DNA from: Botryllus schlosseri
Taxonomy: Eukaryota
Assembly: GCA_051294905.1 (NCBI GenBank)
Contig: CM119372.1
Span: forward strand, 2,418,001-2,482,000
Length of the DNA: 64,000 nucleotides
Direction of reading: 5' to 3'
This document shows, one piece after another, positions 801 through 62,258 of this stretch. Position 1 is the first letter of the stretch. Each line of letters starts with the position of its first letter. The notes under the pieces were generated by a model that was not told the DNA's origin, searched no databases, and saw only the letters and a program-made list of their open reading frames with translations. The position numbers and the translations under genes were made by a program.

Positions 801-3800
801 CTGGTTGCGTTGCAGCGGCTTCGGAAGTGGTTGTCTTTGAAGTCTGTAGTGTCCCTATTTAATCAAGATAACGCATATCAAACACTATTTTAGCAGATAC
901 AGCAAGGATATTCAAATTATTACCTGTTGTGACCATCTCATTGGTTGGTGTGATCATAGCTGACGCGGTGGACTGTATAATATCATCATTGCATAAATTT
1001 CCATCACAACAGCTTGATCGGCAATCGGTAAACGTTGCACCAGTTCCAACTATCGGCGCAACATCATCAAGCTGACGACATGGATCCATAGAGCATTGGA
1101 ATGCAGGAACACAATTGCCTTGCGTAACCTCAACTGTAAATACAAGAGAAATAAAATATGCATCATGATATGCAAACATGATAGTAGAATGTTAGCATTT
1201 ACCAGCAGTGGATCCTTCCGATTTGACAAATGTCAACTGACATTTTGAATTCGCTGGGCATTGAACGACAGATCTTGTGTTAGCAGTAAACATGTCATAT
1301 TCGGGCAAAAATGTCTTCATAATTGCGAAACATTGCAGGGGTTCTTCGACCAAGCCTTAAACAGATAATAGTCGTTTAGGAACTGAAATCAAATATGGTT
1401 ATTTGTACGGCTACAAAATTGTAATGTGCATCCTAAGCGTCGTCTACGGCACTGTTGTATATATAGTTGTTTTCGAATCAATTTTTTGATTCTCAAATGA
1501 ATGAAAATAGCTGTAATGTAAATGTAACAACTTGCGTGATTGCCGATCAGGTAATCGAAATCAAAAAAAGAGGATGTTCATACTCTTTTCTAACTGCAAA
1601 CATATCGCTTCACGTATCAAATGCTCTAACTAAGCCTCCAGGAAGAGAGTAAAGTCAATTCGGATCTAATGAATGAAGGTTAATCACAATTAGGGAAATA
1701 GCACATGAAATAGTTTAAAGTCAATGAATAAACAAGCTTTGTTATGCAAATATGCTACCCCACATGATAAGAGATTACTTGTCAATGTGATCATGGTAAA
1801 CTGGCGCACAATCCTATCTCCTGATCTGCATACAAATATAATGCTCGACTAACTCCGAATACGTCTTAGAATACTTACTTTTATTGACAGGAGTAAATGA
1901 TGTTGAGATTTGGAGGTCTCTGTTGTCATTACAAAGATTCGTCTCACAGTATTTGTAACCGCAAGATTCTACTGTCATATCAGCATTCGGGACAACGGTA
2001 AATGCAGAACTTATTGAATCGAATATTTCATTGCATCCGTAAGATCCCTTTGCAGCCTTCGGCAAACACGCACCATAGAGCGTGGTCACTGAAAAGGGAA
2101 AAAGGTCACTTTAACGCATCATTACAAATCTGCTTTGAGTAATTGAGAAGAAGCCAATTGGAGAATGAAGTGTTCAACTTCATTGTATGAATATTGCAAT
2201 ATCTTAATGGATGATTCCTGACAAATTATATTAATAGGAACTTTCTAAGACTATTATGTATGGCATTCCTGAGAATTGCAGAACATGTAATACAATCACT
2301 AGCTTGTCATTCTGGTTCATTTGAAATATAATGGAAAAACCTGGCAATATTTGATACACAAAGGTATCTATAGTGATCATAAGGCGGTAATCCGAGAGCA
2401 ATGATGCATACATACATATATACATGTAAGCATACAATACATACATATACAATATACATACTTGAATTTTTTCCGTCATTTCCCGTGATCTCTACAGTAC
2501 TGGTAATATTTGCAAAAAAGCAAACTGATTCATCGGGACAGGATTGCGTTCGATTGATATTCAGAACAATGCCAGGAACATCAGCAATTACGATCTGATA
2601 ACATTTCAGCGACTCTGAAATAGAATTACATGCATTTAAAGTCAGATTTCTTTTTCATTTCAGTAAACATTCAAGTAAAGTCTGTTTTTGAAATATATTT
2701 TACAAATTTAATCTACAATACATAATACTAGCCTATTACATCGAAAATTCAAGTTGGTGATTCCATGTCTTAGGGAGATTCATATCTTCAGTAACAAAAA
2801 TATTTCAATTGTATTCAGTATTGTAGACGTAAAAAGTAAATTGGGATAGTCTCCCCCCATTGGATGCTAACTGACTTTTATATGTGGTTTTCAGTACACG
2901 CATGTAACACTACTGTATTTGTTACAAATCTTGACTGTCTTGCAAAATTCAACCTGATATATACCCCAATGACAGACTCTTCTGCACTGCACAGACCAAG
3001 GCTATTGCATATTAACATTTTTTCTTAATCCAACATGAAAATATTTCCTCGCAAAATTTTCGGGCATTCAGTTGAATAAGGTAGCCAGTCTGATTAATAT
3101 TTGACAGATTGATGAAACGTTATTATGATTTCAATGACGTATCCCTTATAACATGGGTGGCTAACCTGCGGTCGTAGAAGGAAATTTTTTTGGCGGTCGA
3201 CACGTAATTCAACTAGTATGGCGGCAGTCAACACGCAAATTGAATTTACGAATTGACTACGGAATTTTTAAGAGACTTTACTTAATCTCAAAGTTTTCTT
3301 TGCGCTGGGCGCGATTCAATGCGACTTCATTTCTCGAGTTTAAAAAAGTAGCGATCATTGCTGATCAATTTATTAAATGACTGTAGCTCCTTTGCAACAT
3401 CAACAGAAAACAGCACGTTAGATTTTATGGTGTCATTGTAACGGATGTGGCTGATTTTTGCTCCCAGCTTGACTCTGTCTGGTTGCGTTTTTGACAGCGC
3501 AACCATAACATCATGAAATATATTTTTATATTCCAAAAATCCAAAATTTCAGAAAGTTCTGTATCGTGTGAATTTTTTGGAAGGTGTCCCGCGATCCTAA
3601 AAGACTGTCTGGCGGACCCCAAAAAGTACCCGACCCCAGTTTGAGAACCGCTTGATTTATAGTGTGCCCTAAATTTTTCAAAACACTCCCTCCATCAAAT
3701 CTACCGGAGAATCTGATCACGTGGGCTGTAAAAGGATAGATGTTTGATAGTAATATGTGAAACTACTAATATTAATGACGAAATTCAAACGTGAATCTGA

Positions 3801-6800
3801 AGAAAATCTTCACACTTATTGCAAACATACGGATTCCCAGTTGCTGTTCATAACATGACCACTCGCGATTTCGGTGCGTATAGTAAGCCGATATGAATAA
3901 ATAGATTAGTCTGGAATTCACCGGAAATGGACAGATTAACATGGTTATTTGGCGTCCAGTTAGTTCATTACGACTATGCCATGGAATGCGGCCATAGCCT
4001 ATACGAGTAATCGAAATGGGGCCTTGAATAGCACAAAGGTTGGCAACCCCTGCCTTACAAGAATTCTTGGCATTACGAAAATGATGAAAAACAGTCAAAT
4101 AGAAGTATAAATAAATATCTTGGTTGGGTCGTGGATATAGAAGGTTTCCTGCATTAAATGAATTGAAGTCCTACCTTTTGCTGGGGTGCGACTCAGAGCT
4201 TGTGTGAAAGCTAAAATATAAGTTCATTGTCAAATCCAAAATTCAATAAGACTATGAGTGGTGAGTATAGAAAGACTCAATTTGTTTCGAAAGATCATAT
4301 GATCCAGCAAGAGCAAAATGCTGATTAAATGATATTATGTATAAATGTCCATTATTGAAAAAAATAATATTTACCTGTTGTAATTTCAGTAACCATTGTC
4401 GAAGACTGAGTAGGTTGTGTGCGTTCTGTACATAAATATAATGCTGAACTTGATGACATGAATTGTGACTTATTTTAAACGAACTCTACACATTACCAGC
4501 AAGCTAATTCAAAATGGAATACGACATGATTGCCAATAAATATACAGGAATAGCCGGTTTCTGATTCGAGATGTTTATCTTGAGAATCTAATACAATGAC
4601 TTTGCATTTTGTAAATGTATGGCAGCTTTAGTAGACTACCTGGTTGCGTTGCAGCGGCTTCGGAAGTTGTTGTCTTTGAAGTCTGCTGTGTCTCTATTTA
4701 ATCAAGATAACGCATATTAAACACCATTTTTCAGCAGGTACAGCGAGGATATACAAATTATTACCTGTTGTCACTCTCTCATTGGTTAGTGTGATCATAG
4801 CCGATGTAGTGGACTGTATAATATCATCATTGCATAAATTCCCATCACAACAGCTTGATTGGCAATCGGTAAAAGTTGCATCTGTACCGACCATTGGTGC
4901 AACATCATCAAGCTGACTGCAGAGATCCATAGAGCATTGGAATTCGGGAACACAATTGCCTTGCGTAACCTCAACTGTAAATACAAAAGTAAAAAAAAAT
5001 ATGCATTATGAGCTACCAACATGACAGCATAATGTAAGCATTTACCTTTGACAGTTGTCCCAGCAGTGGACACTTGCGATTTAACAAACGTCAATTGACA
5101 TTTGGAATTTGCTGGGCACTGAATGACAGTTCTTGTGTCAGATGTAATCGTGCCATATTCAGGCAAAATTGTCTTTGTAATTGCGAAACATCGCAGTGGT
5201 TCTCCGACTGAGCCTTTAACAAATAATGCTAATTTAGGCACAGAAATCAAACATGGTTATTTGTACGGCTGCAAAAATTATGATGTGAATCCTAAGAATC
5301 GTCTTCAGCCGCGGCAAAGATATATTTCTCTTTTCAATTGAAGTTTTTGTTTCTCAAATGAATGAAATTGACTGTAATTTAAACGTAACAACTTGAACGG
5401 TTGCTGATCAGTTAATCGAAATCCAAAAAAGAGGATGTACAGTACACTCTGTTCTGACTGCAAACATATTGCTTCCAGTATTAAACACCTTAACCAAGAC
5501 TCCAAGAAGCAAGTAAAGTCAATTGCGATCCAATGAATGAAGGTTAATCACAATTAGGGGAATAGTACGGTAGATGAAATAGTTCAAAGTTCCAAGAATA
5601 TATAAGCTTTGCCGTGCAAATATGCCACCCTACATGATTGGAGATTACTTGTCAATGTGATGAGGTTAAACTGGAGCACAATCCTATCTCCTGATCTGCA
5701 TACCTATAGCATGCTCAACTAACTCCTAATATGCATAAAAAACACTTACTTTTATTGACAGGAGTATATGATGTTGAGATTTGGAGGTCCCTGTTGTCAT
5801 TGCAAAGATCTGTCTCACAGTATTTGTAACCGCAAGATTCTACTCTAATATCGGCATTCGGGACAACTGTAGTTGCAGAACTTATTGAATCAAATATTTC
5901 ATTGCATCCGTAGGCTCCCTTTGCAGCCTTTGGTAAACATGCACCATAGAGCGTGGTCACTGAAAAGGGAAAAAATCACTCCACCGCATCCTTACAAATT
6001 TGCTTTTGGTGATTGAGGACCAGCCAATTGCACAAAGAAGTATTCAACTTCATCATAATAATATTGCAATATCTTGATGATGACTTCCGAAAATTATATT
6101 AATGAGAACTTTTGAAGACTATGATGTATGGCATTCCTGAGAATTGGAGACCAAGTCACACAATCACTGGCTTGTCATTGTGCTTCATTTGAAATATAAT
6201 GGCGAGACCTGGCAATATTTGATACACAAAGGTATCTACAGTGTTCATAAGACGACGCAAAACCATGAGCAATGATGCATACATACCTATATACATATAA
6301 GCATACCATGCATACATATACAATATACATACATACATGTCAGTTAAACAAAATTATATTTACTTGTATTTTTCCCGTCATATCCCTCGATCTCTACAGA
6401 ACTGGTGATATTTGCAAAAAAGCAAACTGATTCATCGGGGCAGGATTGTGTCCGATTCATATTCAGAACAGTTCCATTGCCAGGAATACCGGCAATCATG
6501 ATTTGAAAACATTTCAGTGATTCTGAAATAGATTTTCATGCATTTAAAGTCAGATGTCCGTTTCATTTCAAATAAAGTCTGTTTTCGAAATATATTCCTG
6601 AAATTTAATCTATTGCCATAATATACTGGCTGTTACATCATAGATCTAAGCTAGTGATCCCAGGTCTTAGAGAGATTGATATGGTCAGTTCCAAAAATAA
6701 TTCAACTCCAATATATTTATTTAATATAGTATGGTTTAAAAAGTAAATTGGGATAGTCTCACACCCTAGGCTGCCGACTGACTTATATATGTAGTTTTCA

Positions 6801-44961: not shown

Positions 44962-46092
44962 GTACCCTACTATCGCCGGAATGAAAAGTCCGTAATTTCA
45001 AGCCGGGGAATTCTATCCCGAACATTTTAATCCACGTTGAATGAGTATTGAATCGAGGATAAATGAATTTGTGTATATAATGTCAAACTGTAGCGATTCG
45101 TATTCAGTTCATTATGGATTGGATTAATATGACAAACGCACTTACATATGCCAGCATGTAAGGACTTGCCATGACATGAAAGATGGACGCATGGCCAAAT
45201 CGCTTTCATGGAAGAAGTTGAGGCAATTCCGCTTTCAAACAAATCAGACTTTCGTGCGGCAGACGAAACGGTATGGTTTGTATACTTGCATTCATTGCCA
45301 TTAATCTTCAGCATACATAGAGAAAATATTGAATTATTATTTGACATGTTAAAAAAGTCAAAATTTTGTCAAAATAGTACCGTTAGGTTAAGAAATTTTC
45401 AAATTCATTTATTTCAAATTTTACTGGCTAAACCGATAGAAAGCAAATTCGGCCAAATAGTAGAAACTGGTAGCGAGGATATTGGAGTGAATATCTTGGA
45501 TTTGAAAAAAATAGTATTTACTGTGGATAATCCAAGAATTAATGATGAAAAACTCGAATAACATCCCTTTTACAGGCTAGAATTGATTAAACTTTTTTGG
45601 AATAGTCTTTGTAGACAACTTGATAATTTATGTGAATGTGAAATTGAAATATTTCTTAACATTTTTTTACAACAAATTCAAAATTTTCCAAGTGCAATAG
45701 CTTCACTTCCACTCATCGGAACTAATCCAAATTTGGCATGCAACGTTTTTGTTAGTCGACCTCTAAATTGTAGCAAATAGCTGCAAAAATTTGAAACAAA
45801 AGTTATTTTTGAACTGCTCTAATGTGCAACAACGCCTAATTTAAATATTTGAGGGCAAACTTTTTAATTAATTTTTTTAATGTCAGAAATGTCGAAATGT
45901 CGAAATCTTCTGTCTTTTCCGGTCAAAACTGCACTATTATAAATAAGACATTGGTTGATCTCAGTAGTATATAGAGAATCCAGACTTGCAGAACATGATT
46001 TCTAGATCGGCGAGGAGACAACTTGCATTGAATCACAAGAGCGGAGCAACATCCGGGAATTGCCCGAATATTGCATACGTAGCAGAGATGGG

Positions 46093-46234
46093 ATGAACAA
46101 GAAAGCACGGCGTGTTATTATAGTAATAATTGTAGTCTTCACTGTGATCTCAGCGACTTTTATCAGCGGACTGATAATTCGTATTTATATGGAAAATACC
46201 AACGCCGGATCCTCACCCGAGTCTCCAAATCCAG
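46093..46234 (+). CDS. Gene B exon 1: basic cytoplasmic tail and transmembrane signal-anchor
   Basis: MNKKARR followed by VIIVIIVVFTVISATFISGLII. Donor CAG|GTATGC. Confidence 0.75.
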
Positions 46235-49200
46235 GTATGCATATCATGTCATTTTTTCCGACTCGACTCCAAGAAAACCGTTTATTTTTTTAGTCAACCT
46301 ACCAGCGATTGGTGTTCATTGTGTAAATTTCCAGCTAAATATCCTCAAATTCCATCGAAATGCAGTTTTCACGTTTAATATGACGTTTTCTTTATATTCA
46401 GTCGCCAAACTCTAAAAGCTATAAAAGAGAAGGATTTAAAAAAACAGGACATTTGGGCGTCCTCGTATAGGTCATTTTACATTTATTGAAAAAGAGGACA
46501 AAACTTCTTGAATAACTACATATGGTATCCCTACATGATGTGTTCAATATTTATTGGAGTACTGACGGCTAGGTTTTTATGTGCGGCTATGTACATTGTA
46601 CAATAAGACACAAGATGTTGATACAGTCGACTATGCTCAATTCGGACAGTTTTGTTCCATTCGCTTTTGGCAGAATTAGGCGAAGAAACCGCTTTGTCTG
46701 AGTTAAGCGTAAATAAAGTGTTCGCTTCAATGTCGCCCGTAAAGACACACATTCCTCACGACGCATTCAAAATACGGTACTGTTGCGTAATAACAGAATA
46801 CTGTGTTGTACTGCAGTGAGTATGACATATCGTATCAAACGCACATTAGTTAAATCTTCCGGTAAGTTGCATTGTACAGTAAACCATTCAACAAATAATG
46901 TATACTGTATTAATGTCTAACACTAGGCTTACCATATTTTGGAAATGCAAAAAGAGGACACTTTTTCAGAAATATCAGACATGCAAAACTGGAGAAGAAT
47001 TCTCAAAAACCGGTAAATTTTTCCCACTTCGTGATCGGTTGACTAAAAAAAAAAAAAAGGTCATCACTTTCGCTCACAGCTCAAAATAACGTTTTTCTCT
47101 CCACATTGCCAGGTGGATGACTAAAAAAAAAGGTCTTCTTTTCGCTCAGAGCTCAAATCACCGCTTTTCCCTCCGAAATACCCGCCGGAGCGTCACTTCT
47201 CGGCTAATTTGCGGCATATCGCTCGCAATTTGATCTAAATCTGACCTAAATTTTCAAAAAAGAGGACAAAATCTCAAAAAAGAGGACAAAAGGGCGTCCT
47301 CCGAGGACACTTTCAAAAAAGTCAAAAAAGAGGACAAATCCTCTTGAAAGAGGACGTATGGTAAGCCTATCTAACACACACATATGGGGTTCATATCATA
47401 CTTTTCGATTTCCCCACCAACGCAACTAACTGGCGAACTGTCAATGAAGCACCTTTACTTTTTTTGTCTTCGTTTACTTTAGTGAGCAATCTCACTTTCT
47501 CAGCTAAACTTTTTTGTACCAATCTGTTCTACAAGATATACGCAATTTTACTCAAGCGCGACAATAAATCTGCGGTACGGTCTTGCATGAATTAATTGTC
47601 GAGGTCAAGGTCAACTTTACCACTCAACTCCAAAATTACAGTTTTTCATTAACACTTTATGTTGGTTGACTAAAAAAATGTCGTCACTTTCGTTCGAACT
47701 ACGAATTTCGTATTTAGCACCATTTATGCCCATTTTCACTCGAATCTGTCCACTGTCTTAGCTTTAAAAGCTGTAAAGGAGGACGAATTGCCAAATGAGG
47801 ACATTTAGGCGTCCTCGGAGGAAATTTTCAAAAACCTGAAGAAGGAGTACGTATGATAACCATACCGGTGGCTATCTTGTGTTAAAACGAATAGAGTGCT
47901 GTTTGTTGTGTCATAACCAATGTTCCCTTTAAGCTGCACACGTGCGCAAATGCGTGGTGCTGACACGGTCTCTGCGCACAGAAAATCGAAGTTGCGCACA
48001 AAAAATCCGGAGTATTGACTTTTTCTTTAGTCGTTACGCACTGTTGTCCGAGGGTCTACGCAATGAGTTGGTGAGTGTGCGCAGACTTGTCAAAAATTAG
48101 AGGTAACATTGGTCATAACCTAACGAAAGGAATTACGAGCCTATGTTCGAAGTAATCAGCGAATTGTCCGAATTAATCGAGTCTTATTCATGTGCCATTT
48201 TTACTTTGGTTCCGATCCTGAGCATGTTGGCCGAATTAGTGGATGCCCAGGTTATCCAGCGTCCTAATAAAGCGGAGTACTTTTATATATTAGGGCGTTA
48301 CTATATCTACAGCGATGATTTGGATAATCTTCGGCAATATCATCGGCAAGCATTGCTTGCATCGACCGGTGTATCGACAGTGTACAATGTCTGCGCACTT
48401 AATATCATGGAAATAAGATATGCAAATATCAACGATAATGCAATGTATTCGAGAAACTTGAGGCTGCTCGGGAGTTGTATCGCGTAATTAAAAACTGGTA
48501 CCAGCATTGGCCGTAGGGTAGGCCGTAGGGTGATTAATAATAGCCCCATCTCTGTGAGAATTGCAAGTCGATTCTCTCGAAACGATATCACAAACAATTA
48601 CCGATAATTATTGGTGTTTGATACACATACCACATAATCGAAGAATTCCTTCGGAAATTAGAAGCACAGTCCATTTATCAGAATCAGCATTGCACAACGT
48701 TGGGTGTAGATGTGCAGTGTCAGCAGTCCTTGCAGTTCATCGTGATAGGAACTTGGAAAAATCGTTGGTGTATTTTTAGAGCAGCTTCATATTTTGAAAT
48801 TTATCGCATATCGAATTAGGTGATGTTAAAGTGTTGGCTCTTGCTGTACCTGCTTCTGCTGGTAATGCGAGTGAAAGTCAGTTGTTACTTGATTAGCAAT
48901 GAAGCAAAACAAATGCATAAATATCCTATCATATCGAAAGGTATATTTGTTTAACCAATATTTATAACCGTAGTTGCCAATTGAATGGCGTTGCATAATT
49001 TTTGTCTTAGGTATCCGCGACGAGGCAAGAAAGAACCGACCGATTTCAGATGATCAGAAACGAAATCCATCTTCGAGCAATCATAGTAAAATACCTTCCA
49101 TTTTGGAGGATCCAACGAATCACCAGGTATAGACTTGTTTAAGGTGCATGGTGGATTATGCGGACACAACCACACATACGTGAATGTAAAGCGGTTGTGC

Positions 49201-52200
49201 GTATTGTTAAATTGCCGAATAAGGAATCGTCAAAACGTTAACGCATAGCAGCAGTTAATTGATGTTGCTGATAGTGATGCATTACGAATTGCGTTTCACA
49301 TGTATTGACATGCGTCCCTGAACACTCTCAGTGCAAAGAGTGAGAATTCACACCCAAAAGGTGGTGCTCAAAACAGAACCTACCTCAGCATTCAGAAACC
49401 CCTTTCTCGGGCTGTCGATCGAATATGTCACCGGTATTGTGAGACTGGAGGTATTTCCTTATTAGTGTGTTTCAAATTCAGAACGGTTTGACCCAACCAT
49501 CATTATGAAATGGCGTTCACTTTCTCTGTATGTATATTCAATCACCAGCCTAGCTCTTTTGGTTACTTTGCGCAAGAGACAATCTTGATTGATTCATGGC
49601 ATATTAAACATTGTTATAAATCCTACATGGCTGCGTGGATAGATACCTTCCTAGACGTCTCCACGCCTCTTTTAGTTCATTGATATAGGCATTTATGTAT
49701 TTGTGCTTGTTCTAATTTGTCAAGCAAGGTTTGGATTACGATGTATGTGTGTTGATTTATACCGCGATATAACTGTGACGTATAGGAGGAGCTGTTTCGT
49801 GTACCACCTTCTGGCTGTGAGTACAGCCTCTTTATGCTGAGAGTCTGTTTCTATACTGTTGACGTATACATTTCAAAGGAATAAGGTTGAAATATTTACA
49901 CATTTAGAAAAACGACCAATCTTTGTCTACGGAGGAAATCGTCACTGCTTCATCAACGCATTCAACAAAGCTCTCTGATATAGCGCCCACTAACTCTAGA
50001 AATCTGGAAACCCATATCAGTACCGTAAAGAGTGCAACAACGATTTCAAATCGCGACCCGGCGCGTGCCGTATCCAGTAACACAACGACATCGTACCAAG
50101 GTCAAACGACTGTCACCAGTACTACTATCGCTCTTGGTCGCGATACGGGTACGTTGACCACCAGCTCTGAGATATTGGACCGTGGGATGGCGAACACCGT
50201 GACAACTACTTCAACTATTTCAAGCAACGACAATCAAATGACTGTAACGAGCACCACAACTTTATTCAACCGAGACGACGGTAGAACCTCAACGAACAAT
50301 TCGACGATGTCTAATCAAGGAGTAGCGAGCACAATCACTAGTACAACGACTGTGTACAGTCGTGATATGGCGAAGACTGTTACCACAAATGAAGTAACTT
50401 TTACTGATATGAACACGGCTGATGAAAACAGCGTTTCATCTGTGGTACACGAGACCAGTAGATCTGAATATGCGATCAGTTCGTCCACAGAACAATCAGA
50501 TATCGTGGAAATAGTCTCTACTGATGCAATTAAACAGGGAGACAGACTTGAGAGCGAGGTGACGACAATGCGTGAAATTACAAGGTCAGTAGAGCGAGCT
50601 AAATCGGGAGTAGCACCGACCTTGATTCGACTTTCCATATCGAGTCAAGGGAGGCGATACCTAAACATTCTCTGAATTTCCCTCCTGCGTATAGTGACGA
50701 TTATTAAAGCGTTCGCATCTCTAATATTCCCAATTTGAGCAACCGTTTTGCATTAATGGTCTACCAGAACACCAAAAGCCAAAGTCGACTTATACAACAA
50801 AGCCACAATTTAGCAAGGGGCTACTCAACTATTTTTAGCAATGATCCATCTACAAAAGGATAAAGGTCGCTTAAGAGACTCATGCAACTACGCCACAATT
50901 TAGCAACTGGCTACTTAACTACTTTTAGCAGCGATACATCCACAAAAGGGTAAAGTTCGCTTTGGTCCGTTATTACTTTCATGAACTAATTTACAATCAT
51001 ACAAATGCGGTACGGTATAACTAACGAAATCCCGTGGTCTCAGAAAAAGCAGTTAGCGAAACGTATTTGTAGTTCTGTTAGTCACGGTTAGTGGGAGAAT
51101 TGTTATTATTGGGACTTTGTCTTTGCAAATCAATGATAATGGATTTGGTTTTGTTAAAAAATCTATACTGAGACTGGCAAGGCCCGGATTCACCATTGAC
51201 AAGACCCTTTACACCGCCAGTCGAGTAGTCCTGAACTAGTATATATATATATATGTATTATGTATGTTGTACACAAAACTTTGGAATATAATTTATATCT
51301 GCCTATACACTTCACGGAGGACAATCTACAGCAGTTGGTTCCCAAACGATGGGGAATTCCCCACTGGTGGGGAATTTTGGGATTTCTGGTGGGGAATAGA
51401 CCCATTAAAAAAAATCTCTACAGTAGTATCCTCCTTCATTAAATGTCGTTTTGAAATGCCTACTGAGTATTTCGTAGCTCATTTGCAATTCGGCGATTCA
51501 TATTATCAGTGCCTCCAATTAGCGAGAATCGCTAGGATAGCGACACGCAATCTCCAGCAATTTTTTTATTCATTGGTACACCATCATCGGTCACGAATCG
51601 TAGTGATAGAATAATTCTGATTCGTTGTAATAAGAGCTCATATTGCTGAACATGTATTCAAGGGAGATCGTGGACTCGCTAATTGACAGCACATCCGGAC
51701 TCGTTACAAATGAAATTAGCCTACATTTTTATGTTCTTTCAAGTTCCTTTATAGTATTGTGCGAAAGTGTAGTTGACGGCGGCTTATATATATATCGCAC
51801 GCATGAGTTCGTCAACATCAGGAAGTTTATCCGACCCATGTATTATTCGATATTCACGTATGTATATTGATGCTACCCCGCCTCATTTGGAAAATTTTCA
51901 AACCCCTCCTATTTTTCTGTTGGATGGGCGCCGGGGTAGATACATATATTTACGGAGGTACGTCTACGGTTACCAGTTCACCGCTGCGTTAATTTTATTG
52001 TGTGCTGATCAAATCCGGGGATCTTAACAATCACCAATAGCACGTACTATTTACTAAGCAAAGTCTTGCAAAATTTTATTGGAGGTAGCACTTTAAAGGG
52101 TGGATATGGATATAGAGATTTTAGGTGGGGAATGAAGGCTCGGAATAAATCGGAAGTGGGGAATTACGATAAAAAGGTTGGGAACCACTGATCTAAAGAA

Positions 52201-55200
52201 ATACAGACTTGAGCCTATCTCATACTCTCCAATGACATTGCTCTAGCAAAGTCGTCTCGCCCTCTAGTACCGCAATAACGAAGGATATTCCTGCAACAAA
52301 GCCCTCAGATTCAGCGACTTCAACCGATCCAGCGAAAAAGACAATGTCAGGTAAGAAACAAAGGAGCTAATACGTTGGAAAATATCGCGAATCTGCTCTA
52401 CAATTAACCGCTTTTTGCTTCAAATTTGTGTCTTGACGAGCTTCTCGTTTGATTCAGAACATCACGTATTTTTCGTCGACGGAGAGTTCACTTGTGACCA
52501 AGCGCATCGAGCGTGTGGTTCGAAGAAAGCGCTCGTGGCCACTAAGAGAGATCTGGACGAAGCATGGGAAGCTGGGTTCAGCAGGTGTGATCCTGTATAT
52601 AAGTTACATATATTTATATACTGTTATTATGAGACAGTCAAGTATAGTTTATGAAGCATACTCCTAACAGCATATCTCACGGCTCGATTCACCGCATCTG
52701 CCTGTGAGCTGTGATATTTAGTTGATGAATGATATTTGATAAATGATACTAATTTCATGACATTGACAAATATATTTACAATCAAGGCACAGCAGATGAT
52801 TGTAGTTATATAATTAGACTAACTAGAGCAGGGGTGGGCAAACTACGGCCCGCGGGCCGCATGCGGCCCGCAACACCGTTCTGTGCGGCCCGCGAGAGTC
52901 TAAAGAAACTTTTTAAAAATATTGATAAAATGCGTACTAAAAATCGAAATGTTGCAGGGACTTGATTAAACTTATTCTTAGTATATTTCACCGTGATAAT
53001 TCAGTGGTTCTCAAACTGGGGGCACCCCCTTGGGGGCGTGAAAGTATCTGAAGGGGGCGTGAAGCTAAGCTAAACTGAAAAATTTTTCGCGCTATGCGCG
53101 ATTTACATCCAATTCATAGTCATTGCTCTGTATTTAGTATGAATTTCACATTTTAAAATCCCTCATGCACAGTCGTAACCTTCCATGTCATCAAACTATC
53201 CAATCCATTAGGTTTGCTATAGCATCCTGGTTGCGTTTTGTGATATGACGATGAGGGGTGCGCTAAATCTTTCACCATCATAAGGGGGGGGGGGGGGGTG
53301 TCTTAAAAAGTTTGAGAACCACTGTTCTAAGGTTAATACTTCCTATATTATTTTTTATGTTTAATTTTGCTGCGCGACAGCCTGATCTCAAGGCCCACAC
53401 AGTTTAAAAGGTTTCAACTGCTAAACATCACAGAAATCCTAAACGAGATTGACATAATTCGGATCGTGAGTGAGATTTCAGATTGGCTACTCCTGTTTTA
53501 ATTATTTCAGGGATGTGCTTATGAAAACGATTCGCTCGAGTCTTAGAGGTGGATTCGTTCTGTGTATGCGTATAATTGGGGTATTATTATTTTATCTATA
53601 CCTGCGTGTTTGAAGCAAACATGGTTATGATGCTGTCAGCATTGTGTGTCCTGGAACTTAGGCAAAAGTGGAATCAGTAAATCTATGAACAGATCGCTGC
53701 TCACAGATTTAAATTTTAATCCTGTTCTAAGAATCGGGATAACCGACTTTCATCTCTATAGTTTTGACAAATTGGGTATTGAGGTCGGCCAACGTATGAA
53801 ATCTCGCGACTATGTTTCTGACGCGTGTACGATATCACCAAAGCAATGTTTGGTTTGTTTTAAATAAGCACATATACTATCTCCATGTCCTCACTATATA
53901 TTCAAATACCAATATTGCGATTTGGTTTATAATCCCAATTTTATATTGTGCGGCCCGCGAATGGATTTAAATGTTGAATGCGGCCCGCGAGCTCAAAAGT
54001 TTGCCCACCCCTGAACTAGAGCTAAATGCCGACAATGTAATTCTAAATATTTCTCTGCTTTAATCTAATAAATTGAAATCTGATTTCTTGTTTCCTGAAA
54101 ATGTAACTGTAGCTATAGCTATGCAATGCATACTTCATAGTTTATAGTGCGAAACGAGCTAAGCTAGGTTTACAGACATTTGCCACTATCACGCGTATGA
54201 GGTTAAACTATGATTTGATATGAACTGAACTCGATTTTTGTTGTATTTCCTCCGATTCAAAATTTAATTCACTTTCCAAGTACTTTTCTAATTCAGCGAC
54301 TCTAATTCTAATCTAATTTGTAAAAGCCGAGAATATTTTGGCAGAATAACTCTGGACATCGAAACTCCAGAGAACGTCAATTGATTTATGTTCCACTTCC
54401 AGATGCACGTACGGTTGGCTTCACGACAAGCACGTTGCTATGGTAACACAATCCCCAAACGAACGATGCCACAAGACAGACGTTGGTGTGCTTTATAGCG
54501 AATCACCTCAGAATTGCGAAGACAAATTCCAAGGGGTTTATTGTATCAACGGTAGGTGTAAACTTCGGCGATGAGTCGATTAGTTTTGTTTATTGATTCG
54601 CGACACGATACCAGGAACGGCAGACCTGCTTCATGCGCAAGTCGCTCATCAAAAATCTTAGTTTTGGAAGAGCGATAATAAATTGTAGGCTATCGAATGA
54701 AGTATATTTTTGTATGGTAATACCATAGTGTCCTGTATGGTGTGGACACAAGAAAATCTCACGGCTCTGTGAAACTGGTCTTCGTCACACTTTCCATTTG
54801 GTCAAAGGCAATTTGACGGTAATTTTTGACCGGCTCGCCGAGCGTTAAATGTGATGAAACGGGTATCAATCGAAAGCTACCGCGGTACTGATTGCGCAAA
54901 TATAAATTTCATTCTGCTCGTGGTCCTGGAACCCCCTAAAATCAGCTTCGAATCTTGCCGACGATTACCGCTGACGAGTGTCAGCCTAAAATCTTAGGGT
55001 CTATTTCAATTATTGAAGTGTATAGCGACTCGTTGATAAATCTCACTGCAGTAAGTACATTCGCTCAAGATAAGCAATGGATTTTTTTTTTCATGTAGGA
55101 GCTATCGACATACTATCGAAAGATGACAAGCTCTCTATCGGCACGGGCATGAAGAGTATCAACTGGTGGGTAACCGTCCACCAACAAGACGCATACGATC

Positions 55201-58200
55201 TCCAATATATACTGACAAGCGTCTCGACTGCTCATGCAAACGGAGGCCGGTCATACCCGTTACTGAAATATCTCCATTCTATCTACATATGTTGCAACGC
55301 TTTCAACATAACACATACCGCCGAGTTGAAACCAAGAACTTATGTCCAGGAACGACAGTAAGTGAACATTAGCCTCTGAATTCGAAGCAATCGTAGGCAT
55401 GAGACAGTTGCCCTTTAAAGTGGTCCCCGCTTTCTATGTAACGAATGTAGCAGGGGTTGACCATCGCGGCAGAGGTGATAAACAGGGTTGTGCAACCAAC
55501 AAGTCTACTCTCAAAGGATTCGGTGTCCTAAACATACAAGATTTGAGTCAACTAGAAATTGCCAATCTCATAGTGATTTGGAAATGATCAGATATTAACA
55601 GTCTATTCACAGCACTTACTCCAGAGGTTATATATTCAGACTACTTCCACTTCTACTTGCACAGGTTTCGGGCAAACCTTCTTGCTTTTTACAGTTTCAA
55701 TTTCGACAATCACCTGTCTACTTATTTAGGGTTACCGTCCGTCCTCTTTTAGGAGGATTTGTCCTCCCTGTTGAAGAAATGTCCACAATTCGTCCAAATG
55801 TTATCCTTTTTGGCAATTTGTCTTCCGTTTTAGCGTAAAATGCCCGAAAAGACCACGAAAGGCGTTCACTTTTGGCATAAAAGATAGACGACGGATTACG
55901 CGGGAGTCAAATCGGAAAAGGACTTTTTGTAATAAGCCAACGAAATTGAACCTACAGATCTGATTACTTGTCACACTGCACACTATTTACTTCCTCTTGA
56001 AGCAGTTTTGGACCGTCTTGGAAATTAGACTAATATGCCAATACCAACCCCTTATCTTCGCCTAGTCACAAAAACAAAAATCTGCCACAAAATTCACCTA
56101 ATACCTACATTACAATAGAATACTTGGTGCACAAGATGACCCGTGCCTCAACAACAGTGTTAAAAAGAATAAAAGCAATAAAACATGATTTTCATACAAT
56201 CAGTAAGATTATACCAACTATTGGCTCAACAAACCCCGTTTAAGAACCCCTACCAAAACCGTTTTAACGATTAATTCGTACCACCAGGCGTCTGTATACA
56301 ACAACTGCATGCTTTTAGTCCAAGGAAATTCTTCGAAGCATCCGTGAATCTATATCGTCAGATTTTCGGCTCCACCAAAGTCCTGACGCACGTCTATTGC
56401 AGTTACGAAGCTATGATGGTTTACGGAGCGGCAACAACTAACAGGTCTCATATTATTAGTAACATATTTAGCATTTAGGCGTATTTAATCAAAGCCACAT
56501 CACATTATTAAAGTGAAGACACTCTCGGAAGTACAAAAATCCAAACATTTTCGCCTGACTCTCGTCAAGGATACTCGTCAGCAAGTAATATAGAACTGAA
56601 AAGAACATTGCGTATCATATTTGTTGATGCGATCGCTGGGTGTCCGGTCCATACCGAGAAAACCATTACCGAGAATGTCATTACCACCGAGAATGAACAC
56701 AACCGAGAATGAAAATTAACGAGAATGCAATGTATGCAATGCAGACATGTTTCGTATGTGTACGGATCGTGTGTATGTGTTTCACCGGGTGGCCTCATTA
56801 TGTGTCGATGCTCAGGTATAAGTTTCTCGGCCACGCCCGTCTCAGTAATTAGATCTTCGGCATTGGCCATTATCGGTAACGTCCATTCTCGATAATGGTT
56901 TTCTCGGTATTGATATAGAACCCTATTGCTGATATAGGCTACCATGTTATTTTACAATCCCTACTATATTTGCTAACGAGTACCCCTGACAAATGCCAGT
57001 GGAAAAATTCGACTTAATTTTAATGTGAATATATCATTTAATTATTAAAGTGCTCATTAAATTGGATTATTAATACCACTGGCTAAATTGCGTGGTACAG
57101 AGTAGTGCCGACAACGGTATGTGTTCGCTCATCTCCGTCTGAGCATGATTGCCGCATGTAAACTATAACGCAGCCAGTCGTTATTCTATTCACTATTGAC
57201 ACCCCTATTCAATATCATTCACTCCCATTGTCCGTGAAAAGTATCAACCGAGAGATATGAATGGAATATATAACATAATATGTAATCCCGTTAAGAAAGG
57301 CTGGTTATTGTTATGGACTTGTAATTGCTAGATAAAGCCGACGCCGTCTAATCAATTATTCGTGGGATATTACCAATCGTCGAATCACTTAGGGTAATCC
57401 TGGTTAGTATACAACCGAGGTGGGTGTCTGATTGAAAGACTATACTCCAAGTCGTTTCGGCATCGCCTATCTTTTCATTATATTGCAATGTTGTGGTGCA
57501 TTGATTTGACAAGAAAATTAATAAAATAACCATGATGATGACTAACTGCATGGTCTAAGCAAGTCACCAATGTGTCATACTTAATCGTTGATTACAGGGG
57601 CACTACGGTCGCCTCAAGTTAAAGTTGAAGGTGTGAGGATATTTCAGGGCTGTAACCAAGTCACAAGGCTCCGAGTCACAAGTCAATCGCACTTTTAGTT
57701 TTTACTCGAGTCTAGTCGAGTCATTTTCAATTCACCATCGAGTCAAGTCCGAGTCCAAGTCATCAAGCAGAGGTTCGAGTCCGAGTCATAGTATTATGAC
57801 TCCAGTCCGTGTCCAAGTCATGGTGTTGACTGCTCAATTTCCAGTTAAAGTCTTGCTAAACCAACTTTTAGAACTTTGTTTGGTGATATCAAATGGTTAG
57901 CATCTTAAGATGCTAATTTTCCTCACTTTCAGCAGTTTCTGACCGCATTTTCATGTACTAGTACCAATAGACGAAGCACTAATAGGGTGGTTACGTTACT
58001 ATTCTTCGAAATTACAATGGAATGTCGGTCTCGACCGTCTAAGTCTCGAGGCATATGACTTGGTTCGAGTCATGCGCAGACTCGAGTCCGAGTCGAGTCG
58101 AGTCATTTCCGTATTTTGATAAAATGACTCGAGTCAAGTCGAGCCATCAAAAATTCGTGACTCGAGTCGGACTGGAGTCGCGTCATGACTCGAGTCATTA

Positions 58201-61200
58201 CAACCTGGGATATCTATAAATTACGAACAGTCTTGGCAGCCGCCATTTCCTTTAGAAATCCACATATTGTAATTGTCGCTAACATATGTCCACGAGTGGC
58301 TACATTCAGCTTGAGCTACATCTCGCTCTTAACACCTTACTTCCTAACTTCTTTACTAAACTCTCCGGCACGCATTTGACTCAATGTTGCACTTCCTGCG
58401 GCTTAGTCCTATTAGGTTAAGAATAAGTATAGGTATTCCGGTAGAAGCCCGCGACTTCTCTTAAGTTTTGTAGTTTCGGGGAAGCTGATTCGTTAATCGA
58501 CGGAAGTTGAATTAGTGATAATGCAGAAAACAGCCACCTATACACCAGGGATCGGCAACCTTTTTTGCTCTGGGGACAGGCTTGCGGATACAAAAATGTT
58601 AAACATTGAAAATTAATTGTAATTCATACAATAAGGTTACTATAATATGCCAGTAGTAATACACAATTACAAATGCTCCGGGAGTAACTTATCATCAATC
58701 ATAACCACTTAATTCTGAGCAGTCACTTTACGTGAAAAAAGTATAGGAATATTTCGCGTACCAGCATAATGGGATTAATACCTTCTATTCGGTAACAGCT
58801 TGTAAGTCTTCATTGTCATCTCTTGCAGATCGGCCATCATCCGACAGATTGTAACTTCAGCCGTCGAAATCGGCCTCGACGGGCTGATTATCAACTACGA
58901 ACCGAAATTGAATTATTCGCGCGACCATGCAAACACGTACATTCAATTTCTGAACGATTTTAGCGACGCGGCCGAGAAACATGGTATTTCAATTGGCACT
59001 GTGATATCTTCGTGGGGCATTCTCAAGGTAAGTGAGCTCGGCAGTGGACAGTTTGCGCTTCGTTCAAAACTGTCCCAGCTACTGGAAGTCACAATTCTGA
59101 CGACGTTGCTCTTCTACTGAGAACATGGGATTTAAATCGTATATCATCGCTGCGCAGACGGCGCGCTCTTTGGGTTGAAATTATATTATTTCCATAATCG
59201 ATTTCTATTATGTTTTGCCTAGTTTAGGGCACGGCAAAATCGAGTAATTGCAAGTTAAATATCACATTGATGACGATTTGTTTTTGTCGACCATACCGTT
59301 GCAATTAGGTTTGCATTTAAAACAAACGATGTTTTAAAACACTTTGTTTAAAACATGTTTTAAACAGTGTTTTAAAGAAAGGCCTTTAAAAAAACAAATT
59401 GGCGTTTTCTTTGATTGTAAAATCATGCCCTAATTGTGTATATACTTTCCAAAAAACATGTTGTATTAGCCTACGGACAAATACCACCCGATATAGCCGA
59501 CTTATAAATAGTCGGTTCAACATTAATAGTACACATATTTCGTCAAAGGAGCTATAATTACCTTATATTCTCAATTGTCGATGTCAATCCACTATGACGT
59601 CACAATTGAATATTCGTAACGTCATGGCTTAAAAAAACAAAGAAAAAACAGTAAAAAACATGTTTTAAATTAGGGCCTTGTTTTAAACATGTTTATTTTA
59701 AATTGATTTTTGTTTTAAATGCAACGCTAAATTCACTGTATTTTGTGATGAGCTGAGAATCGATCACTAATTCACAGATATGTCAGTTCCACTAATGTGC
59801 GTAGATTTTACTGCATGTTTCGTATGATGCGATACAACCAGTTGAAGTTTAATGGCTTTAACCGTGGAAAAATGTGTCGCAGCTATGATTTTCGTTGATG
59901 CATCAACTCGTAGTGACCGGGAGTGCATTATTTCAGTATTAGCATGACTCATGCTCACACTGCTCGGCCCGAATCATTAGAATTTCAACTCGATTCGGAT
60001 TCTAGTACACGGATCATTGTGTCCAACCCTGCCAGGTACTGCATCGATAACACTTCTATTTTAGCACTACGACTTGTTCGCCAAAAGCAAGCTGGAAGTT
60101 TTCGGGTCAATGGGAAGCACATACTATGGCCGTGACGTGGATCGAAATAAAGACAGAGTTAACGAAATGCTTGAGGAATTTGACACTGATCGGTAGGGAT
60201 CTCGTCTCATCTTGTCTTATGTTAACCCAAACTGAGACCCGTAGCGAAAAATTGTTTGTCCCGCAAAGAAGCGCAAAGTTTGAATGACGTGCGGCCTGGG
60301 CCATTGGTGTTTGATTTAGCTTATGGTCCGGTAACGTTTGAACCAAGCACAAGTCGGGTAATAAAAGGCATACACCAGAATCCCTAAAATATGTTCATGT
60401 TACCTGCTACCATTGCACATGGCTATTTTTCACAATATATGTAACTGGAATTCTTTTTCTCGCTCGGCGTGATTTACCTCCAGCTCGTAATTATTGCTCC
60501 ATATATAGTTCGAATTTCATGTTTGAGAAATCTCTCGGCAGTAATAAACTTCCATGTGGTACCGATGGATCAAAAATTGCAAAATGCTCTCTGGCCGCCA
60601 AATTTCCATCCCAGAACAGCAAATCTTTTTCTGGCTCAACACTTTGAGCCATGTTCTTTCTACCGCGGATATGCATGTGTATCCGGCTTTTCCAAAAATA
60701 TCTATGGACGTTCAAAAGTATCATCGGATCCCACCCGGTGGATCCAAAGGCATACGACTCAAGACATACGCTCAAGAACTTGAATCTTCGAACTTTTCTT
60801 GCTGTGTTCAATAATCTAAGGCTACAGCAAGCCAAAGAAGAATGTTGGGTCTTTCCCTTCAACAAATAGATTTAATAATAACGAAAATGTTGGCATAAAA
60901 TGCCGTTTCGATTTAGTCTCAGACTTACGCTTTTGAGGGTACATACATACATAAAACATATTGCCCGTAAATCGACATTTTGACTACCAACGCAGCTCGT
61001 TATATAGCGATAAAATACCACGGGCGAATATGACATGCAGCCTCTCTATGTATAGGCGTGTTTTATTGCTGCATGACTAGTTAGTCTAACTATTTTTCCC
61101 GATTTCGATATGGCATTATATCGGTTCACACTCTATAAATTTTGGAATTGAATTGGAAAAGGATGACGTTATTCACAAATAACGGAATAGACAAAAACAC

Positions 61201-62258
61201 CATGATCAGCCGATTTAATACTGCTATAAACCACTTTACCAGTAGCTCTGACGAAGATATAAGTTGTCATGTTTCTATGCTCCTCCCTTTGTTTTAGTCG
61301 TGATAAGGCGTTGGCCTTGCATATTCGTTGCGAGGAATACGAGAGATTTAACTGTAAACGCGGACGTTGGCATTTAATTCATTGTTTTGAAATCACGATT
61401 CGGATGTCTCTTGAGAACGGGGCTTGGGCCCGTCGGGTCAGAATATGGTATACAAAGTTGCGACTAAATATATTTGAATTGCATTCTTCGTGTAACTATT
61501 ATATTAGCCATGTACCTTACATACAACGGTTTTGCGTTGGCGTTTTCGCCTCCTGGTTAATGTCATCGACTTGTTTCTAATGGCGCCTAATGTGAAACCG
61601 CAACACCGCTGTCGGATGGTTATTATGTGGCCTAGGAACATGTTCGACATTTGCTGTCTTGGGGGATCATTTACTGGAAATATTTTTATTTAAAATCTCA
61701 ACTTTTGTAAGAAATGTGCTGGATGGATAATAAAGGGATTTTTCACATTTGCTGAAAATTGCTTCGCGGGCTAGATTTACCGTCTGGCGTGACGGATGCG
61801 GCCCGCGGGTCGTATGTTTGACACCCCTGGATTATCATACGGCAATTTTCAAGTATTTTGGGTCCCAGTGCCTCATCGGCCCCACATTTTTCCTGCCAAG
61901 TTGAGTATTCCGAACAAGTAGGAGTACTTCGTTAATGACCACCACGGTCTCCAGTCCGTGACGCTGCGAGCATGTACCGACGCATTGGCGAAGATCAAAG
62001 ATTGCTATCACGTGGTCATTGCCACGTTTACCAGTCTGTTTAAATTGAACTTTCAGGTTGCAAGTCGGACTTGGATTAACGATGGCGCCGGCTGCAGGCA
62101 AGCTGCGGCGGGAATATTATTGGGACGAGACAAAATTGAAAGATTTCGTCACGTGGTTACGCGACCGCGGCATAAAGCATCTCCACATCTACCCGGAAAG
62201 GTGGCGGCGTCACAGATACGCGGAGCAATATTTTGTAGACACTTTAGCAATGTTTTAG
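46093..62258 (+). CDS. Gene B: type II membrane protein, signal-anchor + mucin stalk + Link module + GH18-like TIM barrel (742 aa model)
   Basis: 11 GT-AG exons in continuous phase: 46093-46234, 49011-49126, 49908-50584, 52247-52350, 52458-52584, 54403-54551, 55099-55357, 56319-56444, 58829-59027, 60065-60192, 62057-62258. Total 2229 nt from ATG to TAG. The join of exons 1-2 to the mucin exon is the least certain part. Confidence 0.8.
46924..47369. mobile_element. Young hAT-like MITE (TAGGCTTACCATA family)
   Basis: Perfect TIR TAGGCTTACCATA and perfect TSD TCTAACAC. Confidence 0.92.
49908..52350 (+). CDS. Gene B mucin-like S/T-rich stalk (exons 49908-50584 and 52247-52350)
   Basis: A 225-codon open exon very rich in Thr/Ser with loose repeats of TVTSTTT..NRD. 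The phase-2 junction joins KVVSPSSTAITK... Confidence 0.85.
51332..52190. mobile_element. hAT-like MITE (CAGTGGTTCCCAA termini)
   Basis: Ends CAGTTGGTTCCCAAAC ... GGTTGGGAACCACTG. TSD ATCTACAG / ATCTAAAG. GGGGAATT subterminal motifs. Confidence 0.85.
52458..54551 (+). CDS. Gene B Link (Xlink) module (exons 52458-52584 and 54403-54551)
   Basis: HVFFVDGEFTCDQAHRACGSKKALVATKRDLDEAWEAGFSR|CTYGWLHDKHVAMVTQSPNERCHKTDVGV...FQGVYC. Fits the Link pattern A..AC....A.LAT..L..A...GF..C.YGW......C....GV....YC. Confidence 0.88.
52829..54013. mobile_element. Complete composite hAT MITE with inner MITE at 53002-53324
   Basis: Perfect TIR CAGGGGTGGGCAAAC and perfect TSD AACTAGAG. Inner TIR CAGTGGTTCTCAAAC, followed by TTCTAAGG. 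Confidence 0.92.
55099..62258 (+). CDS. Gene B glycoside-hydrolase-like (GH18-type) domain, five exons
   Basis: ...SINWWV...IYICCNAF... | ...KVLTHVY... | SAIIRQIVTSAVEIGLDGLIINYEP...YIQFLNDFSDAAEKHGISIGTVISSWGILK | ...FGSMGSTYYG... | LQVGLG...WDETKLKDFVTWLRDRGIKHLHIY. The alternating beta/alpha pattern and the helix-then-LDGL..N.E motif resemble the GH18 DGxDxDxE strand. Confidence 0.7.
56638..56923. mobile_element. MITE with ACCGAGAATG subterminal repeats
   Basis: Inverted ends GGG...ATACCGAGAAAACCATT and AATGGTTTTCTCGGTAT...CCC. Several internal ACCGAGAATG copies. Confidence 0.7.
57645..58207. mobile_element. GACTCGAGTC-family MITE (copy 4)
   Basis: Ends CAGGGCTGTAA ... TTACAACCTG. TSD GGATATTT / GGATATCT. 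Colinear with 62-646. Confidence 0.9.
59306..59729. mobile_element. MITE of the TAGGGTTGCATTTAAAAC family
   Basis: Ends TAGGTTTGCATTTAAAACAAA ... TTTGTTTTAAATGCAACGCTA. Reverse complement of 32247-32676. TSD not evident. Confidence 0.85.

Follow-up and report, generated by a model that had tools for sequence, protein, structure and literature searches.

Can one animal gene join a Link module to a barrel of glycoside hydrolase type, and would the resulting protein cut glycans or only hold them? This question is raised by a locus of the ascidian Botryllus schlosseri, found at positions 46093-62258 of a 64,000-nucleotide stretch of the forward strand of contig CM119372.1 (assembly GCA_051294905.1, positions 2,418,001 to 2,482,000). 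The whole of this stretch is called the window, and all coordinates refer to it. The locus is a real, expressed and conserved tunicate gene. It encodes a domain with the fold of glycoside hydrolase family 18 (GH18), which belongs to a new family and stands in a new architecture. The product may be a stalked type II surface protein whose barrel works as a substrate-assisted enzyme, a reading to which we give an even chance.

With about 40% G+C the region is AT-rich, and its open frames are all short, as is expected for an intron-rich animal gene. Eleven exons on the plus strand splice in phase into 2229 nucleotides, which make up 742 codons and a single terminal stop. All introns of this model run from GT to AG (GT..AG), and every phase is compatible. 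An earlier reading of the letters alone, called here the initial annotation, had proposed 11 exons spliced in phase into an open reading frame of 742 residues. The chain was rebuilt independently from open segments, splice-site context and phase, and the same numbers came out. The encoded domains follow one another as a signal-anchor, a 260-residue stalk, a Link module and a C-terminal domain of 304 residues. The exons and the features within them are listed below.

46093..46234, + strand: exon 1, with the proposed ATG, a predicted 7-residue cytoplasmic tail and the putative signal-anchor; donor CAG/GTATGC; ends 1 nucleotide into a codon
46114-46185, + strand: hydrophobic residues 8-31 of the putative signal-anchor, in exon 1
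49011..49126, + strand: exon 2, a polar spacer of 116 nucleotides, which brings exons 1 and 3 into one frame
49908..50584, + strand: exon 3, the bulk of the Ser/Thr-rich stalk
52247..52350, + strand: exon 4, the end of the stalk, rich in Ser, Thr and Pro; phases fit; donor CAG/GTAAGA
52458..52584, + strand: exon 5, N-terminal half of the Link module; matches PF00193 and, by tblastn, the Styela Link module
54403..54551, + strand: exon 6, C-terminal half of the Link module; matches PF00193; RNA joint to 55099
55099..55357, + strand: exon 7, the linker and predicted barrel strands 1-2 (INWWV, CCN); RNA joints on both sides
56319..56444, + strand: exon 8, the region of predicted barrel strand 3; RNA joint from 56444 to 58829, GT..AG
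58829..59027, + strand: exon 9, predicted barrel strands 4-5 with the motif D-G-L-I-I-N-Y-E-P; 0 mismatches in the X1 contig
58893..58901, + strand: codons of N589-Y590-E591 at the end of predicted strand 4, equivalent to the D-Y-E of the family
60065..60192, + strand: exon 10, predicted barrel strand 6, in which GSMGSTYY holds the invariant Met and Tyr; RNA joint from 59027
62057..62258, + strand: exon 11, predicted barrel strands 7-8 (VGLGL, HIYPERW) and the stop; aligns colinearly with the Styela protein as far as its C-terminus

Exon 2 was picked among several open candidates and is the sole exon without homology support. Its frame is open, its acceptor is clean and rich in pyrimidines (TTTTTGTCTTAG), its donor is CAG/GTATAG, and its sampled words are present at 100% in RNA run X1 and at 88% in run X25.

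Direct evidence that the Link and barrel exons are spliced together is provided by RNA, which was compared with window positions 54350-60300. A 995-nucleotide RNA contig from run X1 covers exons 6, 7, 8, 9 and 10 in that order with 0 mismatches. Its joints (54551/55099, 55357/56319, 56444/58829 and 59027/60065) all have GT..AG introns and fall at the predicted sites. Contigs from run X2 repeat the joints 54551/55099, 56444/58829 and 59027/60065. Since the depth of unique intron sequence is about 0 in X1 and X2, both runs behave as RNA. Exons 6-10 are therefore transcribed as one RNA. The Link exons and the exons at 55099-62258, which the initial annotation had assigned to one gene, are joined in the contigs of both runs. 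Transcripts in X2 differ from the window at 6 synonymous and 5 non-synonymous sites, a weak sign of selective constraint.

The N-terminal part of the protein has the layout of a membrane-held stalk. Residues 8-31 are its only strongly hydrophobic stretch, with a Kyte-Doolittle maximum of 2.7 at residues 8-26. They are preceded by MNKKARR, and the two together suggest a type II signal-anchor. The stalk (residues 87-346) contains 39% Ser plus Thr and no Cys, and is probably heavily O-glycosylated.

The Link module is encoded in two exons, both of which match the Pfam profile Xlink (PF00193) above its cut-off of 27 bits. Exon 5 scores 31.3 bits over profile positions 12-48 and exon 6 scores 37.4 bits over positions 41-92, so that together they span positions 12-92 of 92. 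In the homologs described below, the Xlink match reaches 50-64 bits. Residues 347-438 contain six Cys, four of which have the consensus spacing (...RAC..., ...SRC..., ...ERC..., ...VYC...). The initial annotation had named an N-terminal signal-anchor, a Ser/Thr stalk of about 260 residues and a full Link module, and the protein agrees with it in each of these parts.

What is the domain that follows? The C-terminal 304 residues have no significant Pfam match, and exon 9, which carries the central motif, finds only GH85 and GH18 in Pfam, with E values of about 0.1. The fold was modelled by AlphaFold2 on a homolog from Styela clava (P0002, residues 335-639; 42% identical), using an alignment of 18 sequences called A1. 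The model has a mean pLDDT (predicted local distance difference test) of 92.5, a pTM (predicted template modelling score) of 0.90 and eight strand-helix units of the (beta/alpha) kind. A Foldseek search of the Protein Data Bank (PDB) returned GH18 proteins for all of the top 50 matches, the best being 4wiw (E 9e-11), with template modelling (TM) scores of 0.56-0.69 and 9-14% identity. VIA-align, run independently of Foldseek against 48,161 PDB representatives, also gave a top 50 composed entirely of GH18 or GH18-like structures (Z 16.8-22.0, with about 240-265 residues aligned). These include SleL (Z 22), chitinases, endo-H/F, SI-CLP, narbonin and hevamine. Searches of the AlphaFold DB clusters, the Swiss-Prot models and the ESM Atlas found the same family, and the top Swiss-Prot model matches were YvbX, chitinase 10 of Drosophila, YdhD and CHID1.

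Sequence profiles point in the same direction. When the A1 profile was compared with PDB sequences, GH18 chitinases were the best matches (E 0.0026-0.05). The profile aligns the family's DGlivDYE on the DGcdiDWE of GH18, and its strand-8 segment vDvWraDid, with the W..D motif, on GIMIWSIDQDD. The models thus suggest a divergent family without a Pfam model of its own, lying within the GH18 fold group (clan GH-K type) in a sister-like position. The GH18-like domain of roughly 300 residues in the initial annotation holds at fold level: its 304 residues correspond to an eight-stranded barrel in the Styela homolog, on which AlphaFold and Foldseek were run, and the predicted structure is a (beta/alpha)8 barrel of the TIM type.

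In a Link-plus-barrel model of the Styela protein, the Link region is predicted to be alpha/beta, with pLDDT mostly at 80-87 and dips to 50-68. The linker between Link and barrel is predicted to be disordered (pLDDT <50), and the model suggests that Link and barrel are two independent modules.

The likeness to GH18 extends to several details. Both have a (beta/alpha)8 barrel and an acidic motif after strand 4 with equal spacing, D-G-x-x-x-[D/N]-Y-E here and D-G-x-D-x-D-W-E in GH18. In the present family a Met...Tyr pair, spaced differently from the MxYD of GH18, follows strand 6, and in its wider membership W..D follows strand 8. The barrel has no chitinase insertion domain, as is the case for SleL, CHID1 and the endoglycosidases. 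Unlike GH18, the family shows only 8-18% identity to its members, scores below the cut-off of their Pfam profile, carries a signature of its own and is fused to a Link module.

Relatives were sought by comparing exon 9 (66 amino acids) with 1.84 billion representative proteins. This search gave 33 matches, six of which are spurious. The six (P0004, P0012, P0013, P0017, P0029 and P0032) matched via many short stretches and were excluded; P0004, P0012 and P0013, read individually, are repeat proteins of the pattern ..DGVxVxYTPxxNFNG..

Two of the relatives come from named tunicates. P0002, of 639 residues, is Styela clava LOC120336905, annotated as 'uncharacterized protein', and it has an anchor, a Ser/Thr-rich region, an Xlink domain (54 bits) and the barrel. 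P0034 is Ciona intestinalis LOC100184569, also an 'uncharacterized protein', with the same layout as in Styela. Residues 341-742 of the window protein align with residues 232-634 of P0002 in one BLASTP segment over Link and barrel (42.5% identity, E 1.6e-118), and the identity to the Ciona protein over Link and barrel is 32%. By sequence, the window protein thus appears nearer to the Styela than to the Ciona homolog. All share the order of Ser/Thr-rich region, Xlink and barrel, and differ in that Styela and Ciona have D-Y-E where the window protein has N-Y-E.

Other relatives have simpler or different layouts. Shorter secreted forms (P0005/P0044, P0015, P0031, P0064 and P0065), which come from metatranscriptome contigs, consist of a signal peptide, Xlink and the barrel. 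Xlink and barrel share a single chain in Styela, in Ciona and in no fewer than five proteins known from transcripts. Stand-alone secreted barrels of about 270-320 residues, without any Pfam domain, are represented by one protein of the EukProt protist collection; the rest are from marine or environmental assemblies without a taxon label. Apart from the EukProt entry, an 'Evosea' cluster is almost the only lead to the taxon of the stand-alone and secreted Link forms, and transcript contig L001 carries no recognisable spliced leader at its 5' end. Among the proteins without Link, P0010 has two barrels in tandem, and P0022 (a Logan contig of SRR30952584) has the barrel fused to a GH113 domain (E 2.7e-41) and adjoins a RING-finger gene. 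Judged by such sequence neighbours, the GH113 fusion and the tandem barrels would tie this unnamed family to carbohydrate-active contexts.

Twenty-six barrels, most of them without a taxon label, were placed in an unrooted maximum-likelihood tree. All six barrels that are fused to Link group together in one clade (support 100/99). Within it, the window protein, Styela and Ciona form a sub-clade (98/92), and the secreted Link forms make up the other. The branch of the window protein is long (0.95). This tree is consistent with a single fusion event between Link and barrel. Among the exon-9 relatives, found with a query of 66 residues and mostly unlabelled, no named animals other than tunicates occur. 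Tunicates may have acquired the barrel from a microbial eukaryote, or other animals may have lost it. No GH18, Link or chitinase gene is mentioned in a survey of 2026 on horizontal gene transfer into tunicates (PMC13390645). A trend in charge, by which Link-fused barrels are mostly basic and stand-alone barrels acidic, was rejected as too weak, Ciona being an exception.

The initial annotation did not recognise this architecture as described. No describing paper was found: the literature searched, which did not include Kawashima et al. 2009 or Yoneda et al. 2010, contained no paper that brings Xlink and GH18 together, nor one in which the Ciona locus is named. The combination of Link and a GH18-type barrel thus appears to be undescribed within the searchable literature. 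It is, however, not unique to this genome, as Styela and Ciona share the layout.

The conserved residues of the barrel indicate where a catalytic site would lie. Across the 18 relatives that were aligned, nine residues never vary: the D-Y-E that closes strand 4, a Y and an H shortly after it, the W of SWGIL, an M and a Y that follow strand 6, and a G on strand 7. The first of these are part of the family signature, DYEPxxNY[ST]xxH. The invariant M...Y after strand 6 (GSMGSTYY in the window protein) has a spacing unlike the MxYD motif.

A sequon of the form N-x-[ST] lies at 58911-58919 (residues 595-597), four residues past the putative catalytic Glu. It reads NYS here and NYT in most relatives, and few members of the family lack it. 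Its role could be that of a conserved site of N-glycosylation or of a structural motif beside the active site.

How would such a protein work? A short cytoplasmic tail and one membrane anchor would hold a stalk of about 300 residues, O-glycosylated, at whose tip the Link module and, past a flexible linker, the barrel would be displayed far from the membrane. The Link module would dock the protein on a polyanionic matrix glycan, which may be a sulfated glycosaminoglycan and not hyaluronan. The barrel would then bind and process a polymer or glycan with beta-linked N-acetylhexosamine at the cell surface, in a cleft over strand 4. Candidate substrates are chitin, chondroitin/dermatan-type chains, N-glycan cores and bacterial peptidoglycan. 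In this scheme Glu591 would be the acid/base, and Tyr653 and Asn589 would hold the acetamido group of the substrate, with Asn589 filling the role that Asp has in GH18 and Asn in GH85. The 'bind-and-cut' activity is proposed from sequence, as are the ligand, the substrate and the chemistry of the Asn form, which may be hydrolysis, transglycosylation or binding only.

Hyaluronan is an unlikely ligand of the Link module, by analogy with Ciona. In the passage of PMC12383584 that cites Yoneda et al. 2010, a Ciona Xlink domain, which may not be the one of this gene, is reported to bind other glycosaminoglycans and not hyaluronan; heparin is named in the title of Yoneda et al. 2010. Ascidians are also described as lacking a hyaluronan synthase in the passages of the cited literature that deal with this point.

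A number of observations weigh against a functioning enzyme of GH18 type, or against parts of the gene model behind it. The window gene keeps every invariant residue except the Asp of D-Y-E, which is Asn (N589-Y590-E591), so that its strand-4 motif is D-G-L-I-I-N-Y-E in place of the D-G-x-x-x-D-Y-E typical of the family. Mutation of the corresponding Asp in GH18 enzymes is reported to reduce hydrolysis strongly, and the change from Asp to Asn makes hydrolytic activity uncertain. The middle Asp of the GH18 motif DxxDxDxE is missing throughout the family; the window protein retains the Glu of this motif but has Asn for the assisting Asp and Ile for the middle one. Tyr takes the place of the strand-8 Trp (HIYPERW) in the proteins of the window, Styela and Ciona, in which the D-I-D after strand 8 is lost; the Trp is kept in the stand-alone and secreted forms. 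The GH18-type fold is known from the model of the Styela homolog and not from one of the window protein itself. Against the Pfam GH18 profile (PF00704, cut-off 29.6 bits), exon 9 scores 12.7 bits and the P0002 barrel 26.3, and E<0.01 is reached in only 1 of 18 relatives. Since these scores are below the cut-off, the barrel is placed as a divergent family in the GH18 fold group, not as a demonstrated GH18 member.

Concerning the gene model, the initial annotation had put forward ten junctions for confirmation by RNA. Four of them, those within exons 6-10, are seen in RNA, and junctions 5/6 and 10/11 are backed by homology, through the single colinear BLASTP alignment to P0002. The exon 1-4 junctions have no reads and, like the start at 46093, come from the model. 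In addition, two deep bulk RNA-seq runs, of which about 6% was sampled, have almost no reads on the exons, which implies that expression is low or restricted.

The Asn itself is present in RNA, as the AAC codon of Asn589 occurs in the X1 contig. P0001, the fragment closest to the window protein (64% identical), also has Asn at this position, and so, independently, have P0005/P0044. The family GH85, of the same clan as GH18, natively uses an N-x-E catalytic pair. GH85 (PF03644) is the best Pfam match, below threshold, for exon 9 (12.7 bits) and for P0005/P0044 (19.6-19.8 bits), against a cut-off of 22.2 bits, and no GH85 structure is present in either top 50.

Four readings of the locus compete with, or narrow, that of a stalked protein with a substrate-assisted barrel. 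The one that reaches deepest holds that the Link exons and barrel exons are separate genes and the 742-residue frame an artefact. Apart from the lack of read cover on the exon 1-4 junctions, nothing speaks for it. The 995-nucleotide contig joins the second Link exon to four exons of the barrel, the Link-to-barrel joint is repeated in X2, and the same fusion recurs in the tunicate and transcript-derived proteins described above. This reading is already refuted for exons 6-10 and is scarcely credible for the gene as a whole. A different alternative accepts the protein and takes the barrel for a non-catalytic glycan-binding domain, like the chitinase-like lectins, which would make the whole a two-headed, stalked adhesion or receptor molecule that acts by 'bind-and-hold'. 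The Asn at the assisting position in the window gene, the strand-8 Tyr and lost D-I-D of the ascidian stalked clade, and the long branch of the window protein are all in its favour. So is the fact that GH18 repeatedly gave rise to lectins, with YKL-40, Ym1, IDGF and SI-CLP among the structural matches. Known chi-lectins, however, typically have no catalytic Glu, and here that Glu is invariant in all members seen, the window gene included. The Tyr after strand 6 is also retained, Styela and Ciona keep D-Y-E, and an N-x-E pair is the native state in GH85, the family against which the Asn-bearing P0005/P0044 score best, though below cut-off. A pure lectin is possible but doubtful. A working enzyme, whether hydrolase or transglycosylase, is modestly favoured and about an even prospect, because Glu and Tyr are invariant and because the interchange of Asp and Asn is the same as that between GH18 and GH85.

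If the barrel is an enzyme, its setting may still be read in more than one way. It may be active at the cell surface as an endo-beta-N-acetylhexosaminidase or transglycosylase and remodel a polymer of the tunicate matrix, such as a chondroitin/dermatan-type glycosaminoglycan or the chitin of the tunic or gut lining. In this specific form the proposal is unlikely. It is a little less likely still that the protein is a digestive or defensive enzyme of brush-border type in the gut or pharyngeal epithelium, acting on dietary or microbial chitin or peptidoglycan and not on the animal's own matrix, with Link merely holding it in a mucus layer that contains chitin and glycosaminoglycans. Brush-border enzymes of the sucrase-isomaltase type likewise consist of a type II anchor, an O-glycosylated stalk and a distal glycosidase. 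The closest structures include peptidoglycan- or cortex-lytic GH18 enzymes (SleL, YvbX, YdhD), and the stand-alone relatives from EukProt and the environmental assemblies are secreted. On the other hand, where identity to GH18 members is 10-15%, their order among the structural matches is no guide to the substrate.

Known systems offer partial parallels to the stalked, Link-bearing enzyme favoured here. In the receptors CD44 and LYVE-1, a single Link module is likewise held off the membrane by a Ser/Thr-rich, mucin-like stalk with one span. In the present protein, by contrast, the predicted anchor is N-terminal and the Link module distal and followed by a 300-residue barrel, so that the topology would be reversed. 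It also differs from these receptors in having no cytoplasmic signalling tail (7 residues in the model) and in a ligand that is probably not hyaluronan. Sucrase-isomaltase, the GH56 hyaluronidases and TMEM2 share with it a glycan-cleaving domain at the cell surface. This is an analogy only, as their folds or families are unrelated or distantly related. GH56 enzymes have a D-x-E pair and use substrate-assisted catalysis on beta-N-acetylhexosaminides.

Some further features of the locus can be added. The frame of exon 1 is open for 29 codons 5' of the proposed ATG (46006-46092). In the Styela homolog, about 90 residues form a tail ahead of the membrane segment, which is longer than that in the 742-residue model. 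An upstream coding exon may be spliced into 46006-46092. Open frames at 55366-55584, 56512-56709, 60226-60384 and 61139-61294 were dropped as exons, having no Pfam match, homology or RNA joints. Neither a second copy (paralog) of the gene nor an Rfam match to RNA families was found within the 64-kb window.

The introns contain repeats. An element at 57534-58329, with GAGTC/GACTC repeats and internal inverted repeats, has a summed word depth of 1,300-27,000 in X1/X2, compared with about 8 on the exons of the gene, and occurs in many variant contigs. This makes it a dispersed repeat of high copy number, with transcription or co-transcription at other places in the genome. An AT-rich element of about 436 base pairs at 59300-59735 has imperfect terminal inverted repeats of about 40 nucleotides, a depth of 1,200-6,800 in RNA contigs and reads, and opposite-strand joints in run X12. 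It looks like a miniature inverted-repeat transposable element.

What does this gene mean for the biology of Link modules and of GH18-like proteins? Link modules are central to hyaluronan and proteoglycan biology in vertebrates, and their role before vertebrates is poorly understood. Here, an ascidian Link module stands directly ahead of a chitinase-type barrel that domain databases miss. This provides a testable idea, namely that the early-chordate Link module directed to the matrix a domain that processes or binds glycans. The analysis also brings to light a GH18-like family without a Pfam model, present in tunicates, in one protein of a protist collection and in unlabelled environmental assemblies. 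The natural interchange of Asp and Asn at the assisting residue is of interest to the enzymology of substrate-assisted glycosidases and transglycosylases. If the barrel is an active enzyme, it would represent a class of animal glycan depolymerases independent of the GH56 hyaluronidases, and the Link module would first have guided an enzyme to its target in early chordates, its part as the hyaluronan receptor module of vertebrates coming later.

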